Shown piece by piece: positions 46,014 to 55,670 of a stretch of 64,000 nucleotides of DNA. This DNA comes from Entomortierella parvispora E1425. Taxonomy: Eukaryota; Fungi; Mortierellomycota. The translations under genes and the position numbers were made by a program. A model generated the notes under the pieces. It was not told where the DNA came from, ran no database searches, and saw only the letters and a list, made by a program, of their open reading frames with translations. How positions within the stretch are numbered: position 1 is the first letter of the stretch; each line of letters starts with the position of its first letter. The DNA lies in the NCBI GenBank assembly GCA_020891255.1, contig BQFW01000005.1, forward strand, positions 1,302,001-1,366,000. Direction: 5' to 3'.

Positions 46014-47446
46014 ATCCCTCAAGGACAAAAAATTTACATAAAACAGAAATTTACACCCAAGGGCCTTGTCATCATCAAAGTTAAAGTAACAACACCTAGA
46101 ATGGGTGAGATGTCCTCCAACAAAAAGAAAAGAAGCCTCGAATCGCGACAAGACGTGCAATCTGCATCTGTCTGACTTTATTTGGACTCGATTGTCGCAC
46201 ACACCTATCTGAAAGAGAGCGAAGGCAGTGCTGCTGACCCTAGAGCCATAGATGCCTAAATTCACCAAGCAGTCTCAATAGAAGTATCAGGCACCCACGC
46301 TGAAGATCTGCCCTTGATTCTCACCATCCCGATAATTGTTCAGGGAGGTCTATTCTCTTAAAATCCACAAGATACCCTTGCTTTATCATTCAATCTAGGC
46401 TTTTGTTTTGGATCCAACTGTCCACGTTCACGAGTTCGGTCTGAAGACCAGCATTTGCAAAGAGATATTATTAAAACACGAAGTGTTGTTTATTCCAATG
46501 CTTGATAAAAGTCTGTACAACTAATAGCAATAAGCTTAACAGGTTCCACAAACGGTATACGATTCCGAAGCGCCTGATCATACAAGTTCATTGCATTCTT
46601 GACAGATCTGCTGACACTTACGAGTACCGACATCGCAAAATGACTCTCCAGTAGTGGCTGTAACCGGCTAATTTTTCTTAGGCGGTCAATTGGTTCGCAC
46701 TAACAGTTCTTCGCCAGCTAAACTTGACCGACGAACTTCTTGGTTAAGCAAATGGTTGTTTTGACGTTAATTTCGCCGAAGTTTTAGTCAGCGGGAGACA
46801 TGGTCAAAGAAATCTTAGCCCGCGGTTAAATGGGCCATTAAGGGTGAAATGGAGAGTTTTTGTCTGTTCTTTCAGTTGCGTTGCACTGATTGAAGGTATT
46901 GCACTGTTGTGAAGCACAGAGGCGTCTGGCCTTTAGCAATGGTGTCCGACATTTAAAAGAGAAAACTTTTTGTTTTTTTCTTCGTCAAAATCGCGTGTGA
47001 TCGTCTGATGGACGAGGCAGTGGAGATTTTTTTTTTTTTTTTTTTTTGCAACATTTTATTTGCTATGTCGAGCCAAAGAAGTGAAGTGCGAGACCAAACT
47101 ATCTACAACCTGAGCAAAGCCGCGTGGTCCAGACGACAAATGACCCCGGATCCCCGCGCAACAAATGCCACGGCTCGTCACCGTGTAATAAAGAAGAAAA
47201 CAATGGCACATTTGACGATTTGGGAAATAGTTGTCATTTTAATTAAGGGCTGCGGTGACGTCATATGTGTGGCATGGAAATGGCACAATTGCTTCTATGG
47301 CTCGGAACGTGACTTCTTGCTTGACCCCTTCGAAGTCCGACAAGGCCCGCCATCGTCAATCGAACAATGGACAATGGACAATGGTCAATCGACAACTGGT
47401 CAATCGACGCGCCGTTGACTTTAAGTCCCTTTATTTGATCCATCCA

Positions 47447-50200
47447 CTACTGACAAGTCCGCCCGGTGTTCCCTGAGATAAGACCCTTGATCTCCAACAC
47501 AGTGTTTCTTAAAGCCGCCACAGTACTTTTGAGATACTCCAAGGTACATTTTCGCCCCTTTCTCGCCTCCACAGTCGCAACAATTTGATTCGCCATATCT
47601 TTCAGTTCCGCCTCATTGTGTTCAAATTCAGCAAGGACGGCCTGTTCTCTGGCAGCCCTACGAGCTTCTTGCTCCTTGGCCCGCTGTTGGTCAAGTTGAA
47701 GCCGGAGCAAGGGACCAATCCCTGCTTCCAGATCGGGACCAAAGATGTCTAGGTCTTGGTTGGCTTGCTCCAGGGATTCCCCAATAGCAAGCTCATCAAC
47801 AAGCACATCCTCGGGGTCGTCAGCTGGCTCTCCTGTGTATGATATCTTCATGTTTTCGTGAAATCTTTCCACAAGGTACATGTGCTTACATGGCAACAGA
47901 TGTTGGCGGTAATCAGAGCATGTGCATGCAAGGATGAGATTGAAGTCTCTATCTACACGGATTGAATACCATGTAGCTGCAGATCGAAAGGATTGAACAT
48001 CAAACTAAGGAAGTGTAGGGTGATAATATGAAGCTGTTAAGCAAGTGACCGTGATGAGAGCAAAAGAAAAACTTGCAACAGCAAGTGGAGGTACCTTGAT
48101 GGCAGGGAGCTGTAATCTAACCATCTGAATCGCAGTGGTATGCTCCAGACCCATCGCTTTACTCTTTTCTTTCTTTGTCATACGTCGACAGTGGTCTCTC
48201 AACAAGATTTCGGGAGATTTTTGAACAAAGTGTCCTGAAAATCGATATCCACTTTTCCTTGCAATATAAACACCAAGTCATCGGCACGTAAATTACGCCT
48301 CTTTTGCAAATGCCGTCTCTTCAATGTCTTGTGCCAGGACTCCACAAGGTTGTTAGTATTTGTATGTTGATAGTCCTAGTTTAATTTGAAAGAAGTGCTG
48401 AAATGGTTAGAGAGTAAAGGTCATACAAACTTGACTCGACTTTCAGTCCTTCTGCAAACCATGGCCTACTTTACTTTTCTTATGTACAGCACCCACTTCA
48501 CTTTTTTCTCAGGTGTCATCCATGCTCTCAAGTAACTGATCATCTTGTCGTATTTTTTTGTATGTTTCTGTGAAGCTGTCCCATCTTCTAGCAAGCTCCT
48601 CCTCAGTTTCGGCGGTTCGGATCCGTTTCAGTGGCCCACGTAAATCATTACAGACTTTGACCTGTTGCAACATGAGAATTAATTGCTTCATCACAAAATC
48701 TGTTACCCGGGCGGCAACGCACTTTTCTCACACACTTACTCCGTACAGTTCCTTGGATTTCCTCTCCCACGCTTGAGCAACATGGAATGTACAATAGTAA
48801 ATATCTACCGAGGTCATGAAGGCCTGATATATCGCTTCTGACTCCGCCTGGGAGCAATCCACCATGAATTTGGTTGCATTGATACCACAGTGATCGGAAA
48901 CCCATTTTAGCCAGAGTCTCAGAGTATTTCTAAAAAAAAAAAAAAAAGGCCATTTAGTTCATTGTTGCATCCTCAGAATGCAATGGATCAGTTGTGGTAT
49001 ACTCTGAAACTTACATGGATTCTGAATTGCAGACCATAAAAGCCACGGGCACTCCACAGTTTGCCTGACGATCTCGGACAAGGAGGGTGAAAAGGTACGC
49101 GGAAGGGCACGTTTTTTTATCCTTAGGATCAGGTAACAGTGATTTAACTGTCTTGTGAGTAGAGTCCATGCACACGATCCCCGTGTTCCTAGCCATAATC
49201 TGGTCAACGAAGTAACATGGATAGTGTTTGTAAGTGGGAGTATGGTATGGGAAACACAGACATCAAAAAAGCAATGCCTACCTCCAGCTGAAATTTGGTA
49301 GACCAGGCAAAGAAGTAATTATTGTCGATCCCTGATACTTTCGGGACGAACGTACTCTTGCCACCATGTGCTTGAATATCATTCATCCAAAGTTTGATAC
49401 TCAGGGTGGGGTTAATACTTTTACGGGACAAAGACGTCTTTGAGCGGTAGATGGCAGATTTTACATGCTTGTATTTCATGTATGCAGCAGGGCTCAACGG
49501 GCTTCCTGGTGTCGTGCTCGCGAGCTAAATCACAGCAACGGAAATATGAGTACATCAGTTGGAAATACCTCTTCACTGATTAACGTTCAAAGTCTGGGAC
49601 CTTGCTTACCAAGGACATCGCTGCCTGGTTAACTGGACGGAGAAGATCTTTAATTGAAGTCCACCTCTGGTTGTTCTTTGCCTGGGACTTGGTCCACATC
49701 AATTCGTTTCTGCTCAATGGAATTCTGGCTCGTGCTTCCGCGGAGTCGTCATGATTGTGTCTCCATTGATACTCTACAACCACAAGCTCTCTCCCTACAG
49801 GCTTTTTTCATCCGGATAGAAACAGGACATCTCTGTCCAACGGATGTGCGTTTGATGGTCAAATTATCATTGATCTGCCTGTACCTTCTGCATGTGAAGC
49901 GGAAACTCCAATCGAACCTCTTTTGTCCCCCTGGAGCGCTACCAAAGGGAGGTGCAGGGCGGTAGGTTGGAAGTAAGGCGTTTGGGTCACCTTTCAAGAG
50001 ATGGTGATTGCATCCTCCTTCAACACGATGTTCAATTGAATTGCTGTCCGCTCTCGATGCCAAAACGTTTTGAATTCCTCGATGGAGAGTGATGCCCTCC
50101 AGATCTCGTGCTCCTGAGAAATGTTGTTGGGCGTGTATATCTCGCGGGGATCAAAGTCCTCGGGCTGCAGGAGGATGTCCTTCACTCGAAGGCTGGCCAT
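47447..50200 (-). CDS. MULE (Mutator) DDE transposase with N-terminal Zn-type DNA-binding region and C-terminal SWIM finger; spliced, four 1-nt frameshifts as assembled
   Basis: FTC...CPVSIRM...WRHNH (WRKY/GCM1-like); CMDSTHKT (D1); KFMVDCSQAE (D2); YYCTFHVAQAW (CxxH); TNTNNLVESWHKTLK (E); CTCSDYRQHLLPCKH (SWIM). Several GT-AG introns. Frame slips near 50065, 49803-49808, 48218-48222 and 48165-48168. Confidence 0.88.
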
Positions 50201-50555
50201 GGGGCATGCAATGGAGCAGGAGGCAAGAGGACAAACGCGGGAAGCGCGGTGGCGGGATGCGCGGCGGCGGGAAGGCGGGAAAAAAATGAAAACAGGAACA
50301 CAAACTATTTTGTGCAACCAAGTGGCTTGAATTTGAACTGGGAACAAAAGTGGTGGCAAAAAATTCCCACTCCCATCCTTCCTTCACCAGGATTCTTAAA
50401 AGACACGCCTTTCTTCCCAACTTCCTTCTGCTCTGTCGCTCCTTCTGACCTCCCCTCTTCCACCCACCCTCCCAACCACCCACATATTTTTTTATACACC
50501 TTTACTTCCTCGCTCAATCCCTGGTTGCCCTTTATCTTCCGCCGGGCCTTTTGCT

Positions 50556-53500
50556 ATGGGCGTCCCTTTCTTATGGCCGTTCGTCAAGAAGAAGGGATAC
50601 TTCCCCGACGTTCTTTCCAACTGCCCCCAGCATTCTCGGCCCCCGAATACAACCTTTCATGTCGATATTTTGGGCTCAATGTACCCTCTCATTCGCCGCA
50701 CATTCCTCAAACACGACCCAGTGATGGCCAATTCCATCTTCGAGATGAAGCTCCGGTCTCTTAAATTTCCTCCAGCAACGACTCTTCTCTATATGGACGG
50801 ACCATCCCCAGAGGAGAAACGCGCAACAAGAGCCTTGCGTGAGGCTCGTTGCTCAACATCCCTGACGAAAGCGGACTCGCTGTTGCATGAGATGGAGGAT
50901 ATGTTTCGGCAGAAAAAGAAGCTCAAGAAACAGCAATTCAGGAAACTCAACAAAGGGCTTAACGCAGCATTTTATCTCTCTGCCGACCTTCGCGAGTCGC
51001 TTGCTCAATTCTTAATAGCAAAGGGCTGGAGTGTCATTCAATGTCCATCAGAGGCTGACATCCAGATTGCACTCAATTGCCGCACTGAGGATATTGTTGT
51101 CTCTGGTGACAGTGATAGTCTCGTCCATCTTTCTTCGATCACTACAATTTGGAGGCCACTTGCCAGGGGAGGATACCTTGAGTACGACGTCCCGAAGCTG
51201 TTAATACATTTGCAGCTAACCAGGGCGGGTCTCACAGCTCTTGGTGTTGTTTGTCGGAACGACTACTCCTGCAATTTGAAGCAAATGGGCATAGTCACCA
51301 ACTATGAGGTCCTCCAATCATTGCGTGACAAAGGTAACATCTGTTCTATGTACTTTTGGTCCCTCCCACCAATGCATTGCCATGATGGATGCCTTAGTAC
51401 CAACTAACAGCCCTATTTTGTGAAGACCCCCCATTAGATGTCAACGAATTGATTCGTGCCTATTTGACCCATCCGGAGGTGATCATTAAGGATCCTGGCA
51501 ATTCATATTTCGACTCGGCCCTGAAGGTATTTGCCCGACAAGAATTTACCTTTTGGGATCAAACTCTGCTGCCCCAAGCCTGTTATGAGGATACGATGAA
51601 TCAGCCGCGTTCTTCCCCGTCTCTGACAGAAATAACTGCGAGGCTGAGAAGTTTGCAGAGCCAACTCAAGACTGTTAGGAGTGAAGGGTATGGACTTTCT
51701 TCATTTCACTCAGCACTTCAGCACTTGAAAGCAAGACTGTGTTCTCCAGTCACTAACAAGGTATCATTATCGTCTTCTAGGTCCTCTTCCAACCTGCCCG
51801 TCGCCCATACTGGCGATATTGAGTATAAGTTTAATCGGTACAACACTGTCGACAGTCAACCTGCAATTTCGCCATCTCCTCACGCGTCTGGCAGGAAATA
51901 CAAATATCGCCAGCGGTACGCCATCAAAACGAGGTCCCGCATCATTGAGCACGACCCCCCAGATGTTCTGAAGCAGTACACTTTAAAGCCGTGGACAGAA
52001 CCTCCCCCTCGACCTGTGCTTCCCACCACAACGAAATCAAGCGAGAGTGTGACAAAAGATCCGCCTAATTTCCGGACAATGGATAAGATGCGGCTTGTCA
52101 AGGAGCTCCAGCGGCAACATCCCCTTCGAGTCATGGATGTAGGCACTCTAAACGCGAATGTCACTCGAGCTCTACAAAGGACGTTGCTTCCTGCGTCACA
52201 TTTGCCTCGAATTAAGACCTGCTTGTCAAATGTTGCACGATTGGCGACAGCGACGAAGAGGGCATGCCAGCTAGCAATAGGGCAATACTTGGAGACCCTG
52301 TCTATGGATAATCTTGACAAGAATGACAAGCTTATCCTTGGCATGTTGTGCAAGCCCTTCGTTGCCGGAGACAAGCTTCCTGCTGAGGGATCTGCTTTGG
52401 AAGACAACGAGGATCCAGGAGAACGCAATGAGCTCAATACGACCAGCGTCGAGGCAGATGACGAGATGTTTAAGAAGAACAAGTCTCTCCAGTTTTTTCT
52501 TGTCACTTCTGTCGAGCATTTACAACTCGGAACCTCCGAAAATGTCACAGACAGCAAGATTGGCTGCATTTAAGGCCAAATACAAGCCTCATTCGACCGA
52601 TCAATCGTCTTCCACCGATCAATTGTCTTACACCGACCAAACGTCTTCCAGCGACCAAACACCCTCGGTTGAGCAAAAAAACACCGCATCGAACGCTGAC
52701 AAGGCAAAGGTGAAGAAAGAAAAAGGGGGACTCGGATTCAGTGTGTGCGGTTCGCGAATTCCTGATCAAAGCAAAGGACTTCTTGCCTCCGCAGAATGGC
52801 AATGGTAAATTTGATGTCATCAAGTGCTTACTATGACTAAATGGTTTGTCTGCATGTGCCTGAGCGTCTCTATTCTCTATCTAACATGTTATCGTTTGGT
52901 CTCCTCGTCCTCATATCGATAGCGGCAGGGCCATATCCTTCTTCTTCTGTTCTTCAATCAACTGCGCTGAATCTTACTATTGAGTATATGAAGCACTACA
53001 AACATGGCTCTCTTGATCTTTGCAAAAAGGTAACAATAATAGTCTGCGCCTGCTGCCGATTTCGGGTTAATATTTCTTTCTCTCAAGTATTAATGACCTC
53101 CTCGCGTGCTCCTATTCAGATTCGTGCTCTTAAGAAGAAGGGTATACTGCCTCCGAACACGGTGGACAATATCGATTTGAAGCTATCTCCAGTGGAGAAC
53201 TTCATCATCCTAAACCGAATCACAGGGTCCAAACGATGTGTTACCCCGATATCACCTATGGACAGCACGTTTGTTAACATCTCAGAGCTTGACTTGATAA
53301 AGCTCTTCTGGCAGGACCAGGCCTTGAAAGAACAGTTGCAGAAATTCGCCTTCCATACGGTTAACGTCCATCGATTCGAGAAAATCACCCAAGATGTTGT
53401 TGCGATGTGGCTAGGATATTCCAAGCCTGGCCTACTCATCAACAGCCTCTTGTCCGACATCGGGGGATACAGCGCGGAAGAGAGAAAAAAGAAGAGGAGC

Positions 53501-54898
53501 TTCTCAAGGTCAGCAAGGACCATGTCACTTCCAGAAGTTATGACTCATCTGAGCAACATATCTCAAGCGACCTTCGATCCCAAGACCTATGCCGCCAACG
53601 GATATCTCCTACGAGGGTCGATTAGGACAGATGGATTCCGTCTTCAAGTACTTGGGTTCAAACTCAACGAGCTGAATTGTGTGAAGTACCGCCGTCTTGC
53701 TCCAGAGAAGCTACCTGACCGCATTGCCTCTACTTTGGGTGGGTTGGATTACTATCTGACGGAGATCAGGAATGTCGTCAAATCCAAGGAAGATGTCCAC
53801 CGACTCTGGGGCGATGGCGTCGATCCTGAGAAGATCAAAATATTGGGAATCGACTTAGGACAGGCCTTCGTTGTTGGGGCTAGTGCTATCTTACCTTCAC
53901 AAGGTGGAGCAACTGCCATTCCTGCGAAGCAGCGTTTTTTCAACCTGTCCGTAAAGCAAAAGGCCGTATACCAACCTGTCTTTAGACACAGAAGCTGGCT
54001 AGAGCATAGGAAAAAAAAAACTTTGGGAGGAACACTGTCGGTTGCCGACTTGGAATCGAGTCTACCACCTGTTCGTGGTCCAGAGGCATCTATCAAGGAT
54101 TACGTCCAGCATTTGAAAGAAAAGGGTGCCCCGCTCGAACAGTTTTATGACAATGTCGTTCTGAAAAAACACAGATGGAACGCCCAGAAAGCCAAGGTGG
54201 AAGAATATAGGCTTATCGCAAACCAACTTTTGAGTCTTGTTGGAGGGTCATTGGGATCAAAAAGAGATCCCGAAAACAAGGTTGTCATTGGTATTGGTCT
54301 TGGTGACTTCTCCTCGACAATGAGATTGTCCTCCCTCCATGGGACCTTTCAGTCATACTTTGTCCAAAAGGTATAGTGCTCTGGTCCTTTTTTATTTTTT
54401 TTTATTTTTCATATCATTATATCAAGTTTAACATCAATTGCTTTCTAGGCACGGTCGCTTGGATACATAGTGGTTGGTGTTAACGAGTATTACACCTCCA
54501 AAAAGTGTCCGGGCTGTGAAAACTTCGTCGGCCAAGTGAACATTCGACGGCTGTACTGTTCCTACTGTAAGACCTACTTTCACAGAGATGTGATGGGTGG
54601 GCACAACATAGCGAATGTTGTTCAGGGGCATATTACCAAACAGCAACGGCCTCGTTACCTTCAACCTGTGGATGCAGAAGGGAAATATCCGTGGGAGGAT
54701 GGTCGTGGGGGCAGACGTGCTACGGTGCTCAGCGCACAGAGGGTACCTTCTTCCCCCGAAGCCACACTAAGTGTCAAATCCACGGCTCGCGGAGTCAAAC
54801 GAAAGGCGCCACTCAATTGGTCAGAGGGAGGACAGGATCAAGTCAAACGACAAATGGAGAATGACCCCGATCAAGTCAAGCGAGAAGCAGAGGAGTAG
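50556..54898 (+). CDS. FEN1/XPG-type PIN nuclease fused to Fanzor1 (TnpB-like RNA-guided RuvC nuclease), ~1,310 aa; two +1 homopolymer frameshifts as assembled
   Basis: Model join(50556..51333,51438..52804,52923..53029,53120..54370,54449..54898); splice phases agree after removing one T in 52493-52498 and one G in 52725-52729 (exon 3 may start at 52929). PIN: MGVPFLW, HVDILG, YMDG, PSEAD, SGDSD, RNDY. Fanzor: IRTDG, ILGIDLGQ (RuvC-I D), VIGIGLGDF, VNEYYTSKKCPGC (RuvC-II E), CSYC, HRDVMGGHNI (RuvC-III D). Confidence 0.88.
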
Positions 54899-55093
54899 AT
54901 ACTTATTTTAGTCAGTCCATTTTGTGTATCAGCAAATACATCGGGCTGAGTTTGGGAAGTGGCGGGGTCTGTGCGATGCGTCATCTTCGGTGACGTGTCA
55001 AATAGATTCAATTGTGCCACTTCCGTGTGGCATTGGAAAAAAGTTGTCAAGATTTTTGCCCATTTTGGCGTGACAACCAATTGATGATCCACC
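54899..55093 (+). ncRNA. Putative Fanzor omega RNA scaffold
   Basis: Directly downstream of the Fanzor stop. Hairpins at 54924-54941, 54979-54995 (C-UUCG-G loop), 55015-55032 (6-bp perfect stem) and 55043-55077 (7-bp stem); closing helix TCAATTG 55008-55014 with CAATTGA 55078-55084. Confidence 0.55.
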
Positions 55094-55670
55094 TTATTAT
55101 ATTATAGGCGCACATCGCGTGATGTCACCGCATTTCTGTTACACCTTCCCCTTTTAAAAAAAAGATACCATGCTGCTGCTTGAAGGTTGTGACCATGTCC
55201 GTGCAATTGTCCAAGTTGCTGACTGGGAGCCATTCATCAGCCTCGTTGCCGTAGCCCTTGAATGAACCAAGAATTGGTGTTGTCTGCGGTAAAACGGTAT
55301 TTTAAAATTTCGTCCACCTCGCACTCTTCTTCGCCGTCGATCAGTGTGGTTTCGGGAGGTGCTACGACTCGAGTGCCAAGGGGTTCAACAGGGGATGGCA
55401 AATAGGGACGGAAAGTAGCGACATGGAAGACGTCGTGAATCTTGTATAACTATGGCAGCTTAACGCGGAAGGTGACAGGTGAGTGCTGCTCCAAAAGTGT
55501 AAAAAGACAAAGGAGCTGGGGACGCAACTTGTCAGCTATTCTGACATTGTCGGCCGGGATGGTAATGTTGGTGGCACGCAACAGAATCTTATCACAAACT
55601 TTGTACTTGTGATTCGATATTGCCCGAATTTTCTGATGATCTCTGAAATGTTTAGTGCCTGGAAGCCAAG
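55094..55670 (-). mobile_element. Truncated, degraded Ty3/Gypsy chromovirus fragment (integrase C-terminus, chromodomain, PPT, start of 3' LTR)
   Basis: Colinear with ~62660-63260. PPT AAAAGGGGAAGG (55144-55155, minus) followed by TGTAACAG at 55143. Chromodomain frame is disrupted. Confidence 0.88.

Follow-up and report, generated by a model that had tools for sequence, protein, structure and literature searches.

The stretch of Entomortierella parvispora E1425 analysed here (64,000 nucleotides, contig BQFW01000005.1, positions 1,302,001–1,366,000; the whole of it is called the window) contains a single gene that joins two different nucleases. Its product of 1,289 amino acids (aa) almost certainly consists of a FEN1/EXO1/XPG-type nuclease, a partly disordered linker and a Fanzor1-like core in one chain. 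The gene is intact, spliced and expressed. It lies head-to-head with a probable transposase gene inside a Mutator-like (MULE) DNA transposon that has two divergent genes and perfect ends. No RNA-guided DNA endonucleases of eukaryotes other than the Fanzors are known; Fanzors are in development as compact editors, and all of those described are single-nuclease proteins of ~600–700 aa.

Structure and expression of the fusion gene

On the + strand between 50556 and 54898 the window shows four long open reading frame (ORF) pieces in three frames, located where an earlier note on this DNA had placed them. Contigs of four public runs were compared with the window from 50400 to 55100. Run X1 is DNA-like and comes from a sample holding 96% of the stretch; run X2, labelled 'DNA?', is from the same sample. 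In X1 a single contig extends from 50400 to 55024 with all introns retained. The contigs of X2 are missing five segments, every one of which is bounded by GT..AG. A 2,987-nt contig covers 50490–51330, 51423–51686, 51780–52803, 52922–53027 and 53118–53871, and a second, starting two bases further on, covers 53873–54368 and 54447–55024, up to the end of the element. X2 is read as cDNA-derived because its contigs are free of all five introns, while DNA of the sample should also carry the intron-containing form.

The five introns (51334–51425, 51688–51780, 52805–52922, 53030–53119 and 54371–54448) all have GT..AG ends and are all seen as joints in the spliced X2 contigs. These joints bear out the earlier proposal that the FEN and Fanzor parts belong to one spliced gene, and the longer contig crosses 52490–53120, the stretch where the two parts would separate if they were distinct genes. 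The exon model of the earlier note holds in substance; the count of five exons does not, since the in-frame intron at 51688–51780 had been missed and there are six. The window also has a single extra base in a T run at 52493 and another at 52720. Both are absent from the X1 DNA contig and from the cDNA-like X2 contig, and the base at 52720 is absent from run X5 as well. The two frameshifts are therefore homopolymer errors of the window assembly, as had been assumed when the note corrected them. Once the five introns and the two bases are removed, the ORF comprises 3,870 nt with no internal stop, and its 1,289 aa replace the ~1,310 aa estimated before. The Mortierella claussenii protein P0128 crosses the junction uninterrupted, tracking precisely the frame changes made by the two extra bases.

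Two separate genes, or a dead pseudogene copy in which the fusion is an artefact of reading through frameshifts, would fit the window as assembled, with its two frameshifts, a stop at 52571–52573 and an ATG in another frame near 52543 that could begin a second gene, but the spliced contig spans the junction, the corrected ORF is uninterrupted, independent DNA-type and cDNA-type contigs both omit the frameshift bases, and P0128 and dozens of single gene models hold both halves, so that this explanation was rejected as having next to no probability.

Several other features of the assembly and of the contigs were observed at this locus. Relative to the same-sample contigs the window has a third extra homopolymer base, at 50487, in addition to the two that break the frame of the fusion gene, and other genes of the assembly may hold similar false frameshifts. 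The X2 contigs break at 53872 and the depth rises from ~1,011 to ~1,827 downstream, which fits extra copies or transcripts with the 3' part only. Run X5, from another strain under the same species label, contains a copy of the 3' half (52592–55024) with ~92% identity and several small gaps that breaks at 55024 and in which a different sequence replaces intron 3. Within the window, tblastn found no second copy of the fusion gene.

The two nuclease domains

On profile matches and predicted fold, the N-terminal portion (~aa 1–330) is a metal-dependent 5' nuclease of the FEN1/EXO1/XPG type with predicted enzyme activity. The first ORF piece shows weak Pfam matches to XPG_I, XPG_I_2 and XRN_N, and XPG_I is above the cut-off in the relative P0030 (30.2 bits). 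A profile of 22 family members of this domain (A3) searched against the PDB matches FEN-1 (E 1.2e-11), yeast Rad2 (1e-9), human FEN1 (1.5e-9), EXO1 (1.9e-7) and XPG (4e-7), and the window sequence by itself reaches Rad2 at E 1.3e-4. The AlphaFold model of exon 1 (259 aa) has a predicted local distance difference test score (pLDDT) of 90.6 and a predicted template modelling score (pTM) of 0.86. Matches of this model include archaeal FEN-1 (E 3.5e-9) and human EXO1 (TMq 0.75, root-mean-square deviation 2.9 Å). In a model of the homolog P0043, residues 2–307 align with residues 2–317 of EXO1 over 273 residues (structure alignment, Z 22.6), followed by FEN1 (Z 21.9), XPG (Z 21.1) and GEN1 (Z 17.0); this model matches human FEN1 and EXO1 at 6e-10.

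Seven carboxylates are present in the corrected protein (D37, D81, E166, D168, D185, D187 and D236), and together with K88 and R95 they are conserved in 88–100% of the relatives covering those positions. K88 and R95 lie 7 and 14 residues past D81; in human FEN1, K93 and R100 stand at the same distances from D86. A KKKLKK patch falls within the predicted helical arch of the domain. Because of this position in the exon 1 model it is not clearly a nuclear localization signal, and the earlier suggestion that it is NLS-like was set aside. The domain is assigned to the superfamily as a whole and not to one of its subfamilies. Giant-virus flap endonucleases match it about as well by fold and by language-model features, and XRN-type and viral host-shutoff nucleases are also among the fold matches.

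The domain shares with the FEN1/EXO1/XPG (Rad2) family the PIN-like fold (Z 21–23 to EXO1 and FEN1), the two-helix arch, the H2TH region, an N-terminal MG start, the seven active-site carboxylates, and a Lys and an Arg placed 7 and 14 residues after the second Asp. It differs in being only 14–20% identical to cellular members, in standing at least as near to the giant-virus flap endonucleases by fold and language-model features, and in carrying a Fanzor in place of the C-terminal PCNA-binding tail.

The C-terminal portion (~aa 440–1200) is, by similar evidence, a Fanzor1-like core with a rearranged-glutamate RuvC and a zinc ribbon, and presumably performs guided cleavage. The last ORF piece matches the Pfam domain Cas12f1-like_TNB (PF07282) at E 2.5e-9, with 37.6 bits against a cut-off of 26.3; the two middle pieces have no Pfam match. 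The RuvC residues are D968, E1153 and D1187, the last forming part of an R1186–D1187 pair in motif III, and they are conserved in 229 of 234, 71 of 77 and 69 of 73 relatives, respectively (92–98%). The zinc ligands C1160, C1163, C1177 and C1180 are conserved in 85–96% of relatives. At the canonical RuvC-II site the protein reads VVIGIGLGDF, and G1116, the glycine paired by eye with the canonical Glu, is conserved in 165 of 168 relatives. Fanzors carry proline or glycine at this site (PMC10530073). E1153 lies 37 residues downstream of G1116, compared with ~45 as the Fanzor criterion. An alignment of the Fanzor core was used as a profile (A1) in a search of solved structures, where the best match is mimivirus Fanzor2 (9b0l_P, E 1.3e-4). 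In this match VNEYYTSKKC pairs with VNEYLTTKTC, and E1153 is aligned to E467 of mimivirus Fanzor2, which has been proven by mutation to be the alternative catalytic glutamate (PMC10530073).

The model of full-length P0043 (mean pLDDT 80.4, pTM 0.63) matches SpuFz1 of Spizellomyces at E 7.5e-9 (TM by target ~0.5) and PpFz1 of Parasitella at 2.6e-6. In the AlphaFold DB, TNB proteins of 600–912 aa without the nuclease align with P0043 from residue 305–536 onwards, most of them from ~400–450. The Fanzor core is thus likely to begin near residue 430 of P0043, or ~440 of the window protein, because the nuclease-less proteins align from there. The putative assignment to Fanzor1 is based on the fold matches together with the DDE-transposon context. 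The domain identities given in the earlier note, a FEN1/EXO1/XPG-type nuclease followed by a Fanzor-type protein, are both supported by these results: the first by the profile matches and the fold of the exon 1 model, the second by the TNB match above cut-off, the pairing of VNEYYTS with VNEYLTT and the fold match of the homolog to SpuFz1.

Compared with the Fanzor1 proteins of Spizellomyces punctatus (SpuFz1) and Parasitella parasitica (PpFz1; PDB 8gkh, 9cey, 9cf0), the window protein has the same split RuvC with the catalytic Glu beside the zinc ribbon and the same TNB zinc ribbon, and its gene likewise contains introns, resides in a eukaryotic transposon with terminal inverted repeats (TIRs) and a target-site duplication (TSD), and has a structured RNA candidate at the right end. 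In contrast to these proteins it is about twice the usual size, has a complete second nuclease domain at its N-terminus, and is without detectable single-sequence similarity to solved Fanzors. Most Fz1 proteins are 600–700 aa long, and the sole exception noted is a 100-aa insertion in RuvC (PMC11423790).

The Mutator-like element and its 3' end

The limits of the element and of the features within it are collected in the table. Its inverted repeat pairs 47273–47298 with 55002–55027 (26 nt, 85% complementary), and the 16-nt core of the TIR has exactly two mismatch-free occurrences in the window. The 9-bp TSD falls within the 9–11 bp expected of Mutator elements. At 55024 the contigs of the three runs X1, X2 and X5 all leave the element, each with different sequence beyond, and contig depth is 317 within the element as against ~70–75 in the flanking pieces. 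These breaks and this depth fit the presence of several near-identical copies. In other strains with this species label the stretch is either absent or represented by no more than a diverged copy of its 3' half (X5, share 0.03).

Features of the element in the window (Entomortierella parvispora E1425), with positions counted from the first base of the window
Feature	Position	Strand	Content and basis
Whole mobile element, 7,749 bp	47276..55024		MULE-type transposase and FEN-Fanzor genes head-to-head; TIRs, TSD and contig breaks
Left 9-bp target-site duplication GTGTGGCAT	47267..47275		Read directly; identical to 55025-55033
Right 9-bp target-site duplication GTGTGGCAT	55025..55033		Read directly
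Left terminal inverted repeat GGAAATGGCACAATTG...	47276..47298	+	Repeat search
Right terminal inverted repeat	55002..55024	-	Partner of left repeat
Multi-exon MULE-type transposase gene	47447..50200	-	Approximate limits, start codon inferred
Exon 1	50556..51333	+	FEN1/EXO1/XPG-like nuclease core, aa 1-259; splice joint in X2
Exon 2	51426..51687	+	End of nuclease domain and start of linker; X2 joints
Exon 3	51781..52804	+	Linker, start of Fanzor core (~aa 440), low-complexity Ser/Thr/Gln stretch; extra bases 52493 and 52720
Exon 4	52923..53029	+	X2 joints; supported by homolog P0128
Exon 5	53120..54370	+	Fanzor REC/WED, RuvC-I (D968 = 53852-53854), G1116 at canonical RuvC-II site
Exon 6	54449..54898	+	E1153 (54485-54487), C4 zinc ribbon, RuvC-III D1187 (54587-54589), basic tail at the C-terminus, stop codon
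Structured 3' untranslated end, candidate omega-RNA scaffold	54899..55024	+	RNA folding

The pieces of the minus-strand gene look like those of a MULE transposase with a SWIM finger behind it. On the window's own transposase fragments Pfam gives nothing but a sub-threshold SWIM match (E 0.002; 18.1–18.8 bits against a cut-off of 19.6, on exon fragments only). These pieces are homologous to the upstream genes of three other loci, in Dissophora (L001), Actinomortierella (L002) and Mortierella sp. AD094 (L005), where a transposase gene is also positioned head-to-head upstream of the fusion gene. The transposase exon of L002 matches MULE (PF10551) at E 5.8e-4, with 20.7 bits against a cut-off of 27.6, and is linked to MULE clusters with an atlas score of 0.96 and 173 shared features. 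The order, MULE and then SWIM, is as expected. The L002 element is likewise flanked by a perfect 9-bp duplication, CACAAACTG, and shares the terminal core CACAATTG with the window element. The TIR motif was also sought in L001 and L004–L008, with no convincing ends. Fanzor1 was described in 2013 in MuDR-type elements with 9-bp TSDs in Mucoromycota, and those elements have no transposase gene (PMC3627910). The window element differs from them in being an apparently autonomous MULE with a transposase gene of its own.

Full-length fusion genes also occur with neither a MULE-type gene nor recognisable TIRs nearby, in Entomortierella (L004, 6001–10409), Mortierella sp. GBA35 (L006, 6001–10229) and Linnemannia hyalina (L008, 6001–10175). 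These copies may be non-autonomous, decayed or domesticated.

The surroundings of the element show some regularities of their own. A palindrome, TGACGTCA, is found 2–3 bp to the left of the TSD in the window (47254–47264) and in L002 (4289–4297), the left flank of L005 (2889–2896) contains ACGTCAT, and TTTGGCGTG is common to the right flanks in the window and in L002. These flank motifs could reflect a preference for a target or a target-adjacent motif (TAM), or the element may have inserted into the end of a related one. At 55093 (window 55034–55093) the contigs of both X1 and X3 break, and in one X1 contig the left flank is joined to 55062, three other bases separating the two. Another repeat, ending in ...CCAATTGATGATCCACC at 55093, seems to contain the element within its right end. 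Just beyond the left end of the Actinomortierella element is a gene of 744 aa without a Pfam match (L002 1454–3999, − strand).

Between the stop codon and the end of the element lie 126 nt that are predicted to fold with −54 kcal/mol (z −4.48 relative to shuffles). They include a terminal hairpin at 54955–55024, the 3' end of which coincides with that of the element. The end of the L002 element folds similarly (z −3.2), and the 3' region of L001 folds no better than shuffles (z 0.42). A hairpin capped by UUCGGUGA ~28 nt from the end is common to the window, L002 and L005, which represent three genera, and shows compensatory changes in 7 of its 17 predicted pairs in a comparison of three sequences only. 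A cDNA-like contig (record 11) runs past 55024 into the flank of the locus itself. Rfam gives no match on the element. Folding and these comparisons make the structured end of the transcript a candidate omega RNA, which is treated here as a lead. At the locus of another family member, P0049, an 80% identical piece lies at a contig end and is uninformative on the 3' end.

Distribution and possible role of the fusion

With the 511-aa RuvC piece as query, HMMER retrieved 630 proteins at E ≤ 0.001, and many of the long matches contain all four window pieces in the same order. Among these are P0047 of Actinomortierella ambigua (1,310 aa, annotated 'Rad2 nuclease'), P0043 of Dissophora globulifera (1,166 aa), P0057 of Entomortierella parvispora (1,191 aa, annotated 'putative transposase'), P0036 and P0028. 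When hidden Markov models made from alignments of both domains were run over 264 collected proteins, 50 were found to have both, with the nuclease N-terminal in every one; these include 38 of the 46 proteins of at least 900 aa. Sixteen fusion proteins look complete, with 1,092–1,500 aa. The intact fusions that the earlier note proposed to seek in relatives are thus present, and the named relatives all belong to Mortierellomycota, where they are spread over 11 genera (Mortierella, Linnemannia, Podila, Dissophora, Actinomortierella, Entomortierella, Benniella, Haplosporangium, Gamsiella, Lobosporangium and Modicella). Two AlphaFold DB clusters cover both domains (A0A507C583, 855 aa; A0A1Y2GEP5, 1,083 aa), and a word-based search with P0043 gave six matches only.

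The clusters A0A507C583, A0A507CQ46 and A0A507DPP8 have neighbouring accessions and match the nuclease, the Fanzor or both at 17–31% identity. This accession range probably belongs to a chytrid, which would place the fusion outside Mortierellomycota. Public annotations split the fusion genes or name them 'Rad2 nuclease', 'putative transposase' or 'hypothetical protein'.

No natural Fanzor fusion with XPG, a PIN domain or a flap nuclease, and none in Mortierella, was found in the Fanzor literature searched, as the earlier note had supposed for FEN/XPG-bearing Fanzors; the search was incomplete and is not proof of absence. The main Fanzor papers make no mention of an added nuclease domain, and the matches to 'flap' were prime editing reviews. 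The supplement of PMC10432273 lists a different Mortierella Fanzor of 677 aa, and members of the FEN-Fanzor family may have gone unnoticed in published tables. The arrangement is widespread in Mortierella-like fungi and undescribed in the literature searched, and its sequences are public but misnamed.

The explanation that we favour, and regard as fairly probable when taken as a whole, is a MULE-borne FEN-Fanzor gene whose product would make an omega-RNA-guided break, with tethered 5' resection favouring recombination. The end of the transcript beside the right terminal repeat would provide the scaffold of the omega RNA, and the DNA flanking the element would supply its guide. Under this guidance the Fanzor part would then cut both strands at element-free copies of the insertion site, and the tethered 5' nuclease would trim or resect the 5' strand at this break. 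Repair would proceed through homologous recombination with a filled copy, not end joining, and the element would be restored or spread. The omega RNA and the cutting of element-free sites are suggested by TnpB and Fanzor biology, and 5'-strand processing by the FEN/EXO1 fold and the strict fusion. A role in resection and homing comes close to an even chance. More tentative is the full proposal of a natural two-nuclease guided system, in which the Fanzor would find and cut its site by means of the omega RNA and the tethered FEN/EXO1-type half would resect the 5' strand, so that repair would be channelled into homologous recombination, driving the homing of an autonomous Mutator transposon.

Two known systems provide a basis for comparison. 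The TnpB of IS200/IS605 reads its guide from the right-end flank and is proposed to bring the element back once it has been excised. The window protein resembles it as a transposon-encoded nuclease whose guide would also come from the right-end flank, and differs in its partner, a eukaryotic DDE (MULE) transposase, in having a TSD in place of a fixed target motif, and in the added 5' nuclease. Engineered fusions of Cas9 or Cas12 with exonucleases tie a programmable cutter to an end-processing nuclease, which alters the outcome of repair. The window fusion likewise tethers a cutter to an end-processing nuclease; unlike the engineered ones it is natural, transposon-borne and conserved throughout a phylum, with a domain of FEN/EXO1 type.

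Alternatively, the FEN-like domain could act within the R-loop or on RNA, either cutting the non-target strand as a 5' flap once it is displaced, or releasing or trimming the omega RNA and so leaving the RuvC site free for the target. Enzymes of the FEN family are structure-specific, and RNA is the substrate of some relatives, such as the XRN-type and viral host-shutoff nucleases among the fold matches; the candidate guide RNA, at the 3' end of the fusion transcript itself, would require processing; and the conserved gateway Lys and Arg fit the threading of a flap. However, the TnpB and Fanzor enzymes described so far cleave both strands by RuvC alone (PMC10432273, PMC10530073), and the best fold matches of the nuclease domain are DNA complexes of EXO1 and FEN1. 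Flap cutting and exonucleolytic resection fit the present data alike, and an action on the R-loop or on RNA seems unlikely, though a serious alternative.

A further explanation is that the 5' nuclease serves Mutator transposition itself, at gaps, flaps or hairpins of the donor or target site, and is co-translated with the Fanzor with no functional coupling. Accessory nucleases and helicases are known on eukaryotic transposons (PMC3627910), and the fusion gene is paired with a MULE-type transposase gene in four loci. However, copies without a transposase gene keep the fusion, and the two parts are fused in the same order in every complete relative, for which reason functional coupling is favoured and a merely shared reading frame appears improbable.

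Several observations weigh against the reading of the window protein as an active guided cutter with a tethered 5' nuclease in a mobile element. On the protein level, Pfam XPG_I scores 18.4 bits on the window's own sequence, under the cut-off of 24.9, and in a PDB search the window core alone matches no solved Fanzor by sequence, the match requiring a profile. The Fanzor fold match was made on the homolog P0043, which is 33–45% identical, and not on the window protein. The activity of both nuclease centres is a prediction, and the AF2 model is uninformative on the mutual placement of the two active sites. The case for the candidate omega RNA consists of folding, three sequences and contigs that read-through of an mRNA 3' untranslated region would explain equally well. 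Run X2 is labelled 'DNA?', and the absence of the five introns is the sole ground for reading it as cDNA. Finally, L004, L006 and L008 carry the fusion gene with no transposase gene nearby, so that the fusion protein may also act outside transposition.

That a family found across the phylum, expressed and apparently mobile, has acquired an entire 5' flap/exonuclease domain suggests that selection has coupled guided cutting to end processing. For public records this is also a problem of annotation, as fusion genes are split or misnamed there. Should the full two-nuclease proposal prove true, the fusion would rank as the first guided 'cut-and-resect' enzyme from nature and as a eukaryotic scaffold ready for use in editing biased toward homology-directed repair. 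The fusion may also offer a natural design for editors that prefer recombination to end joining. For the Fanzors themselves, the family permits a direct test of what they do for eukaryotic cut-and-paste transposons, and in particular of whether they bias repair toward homing.

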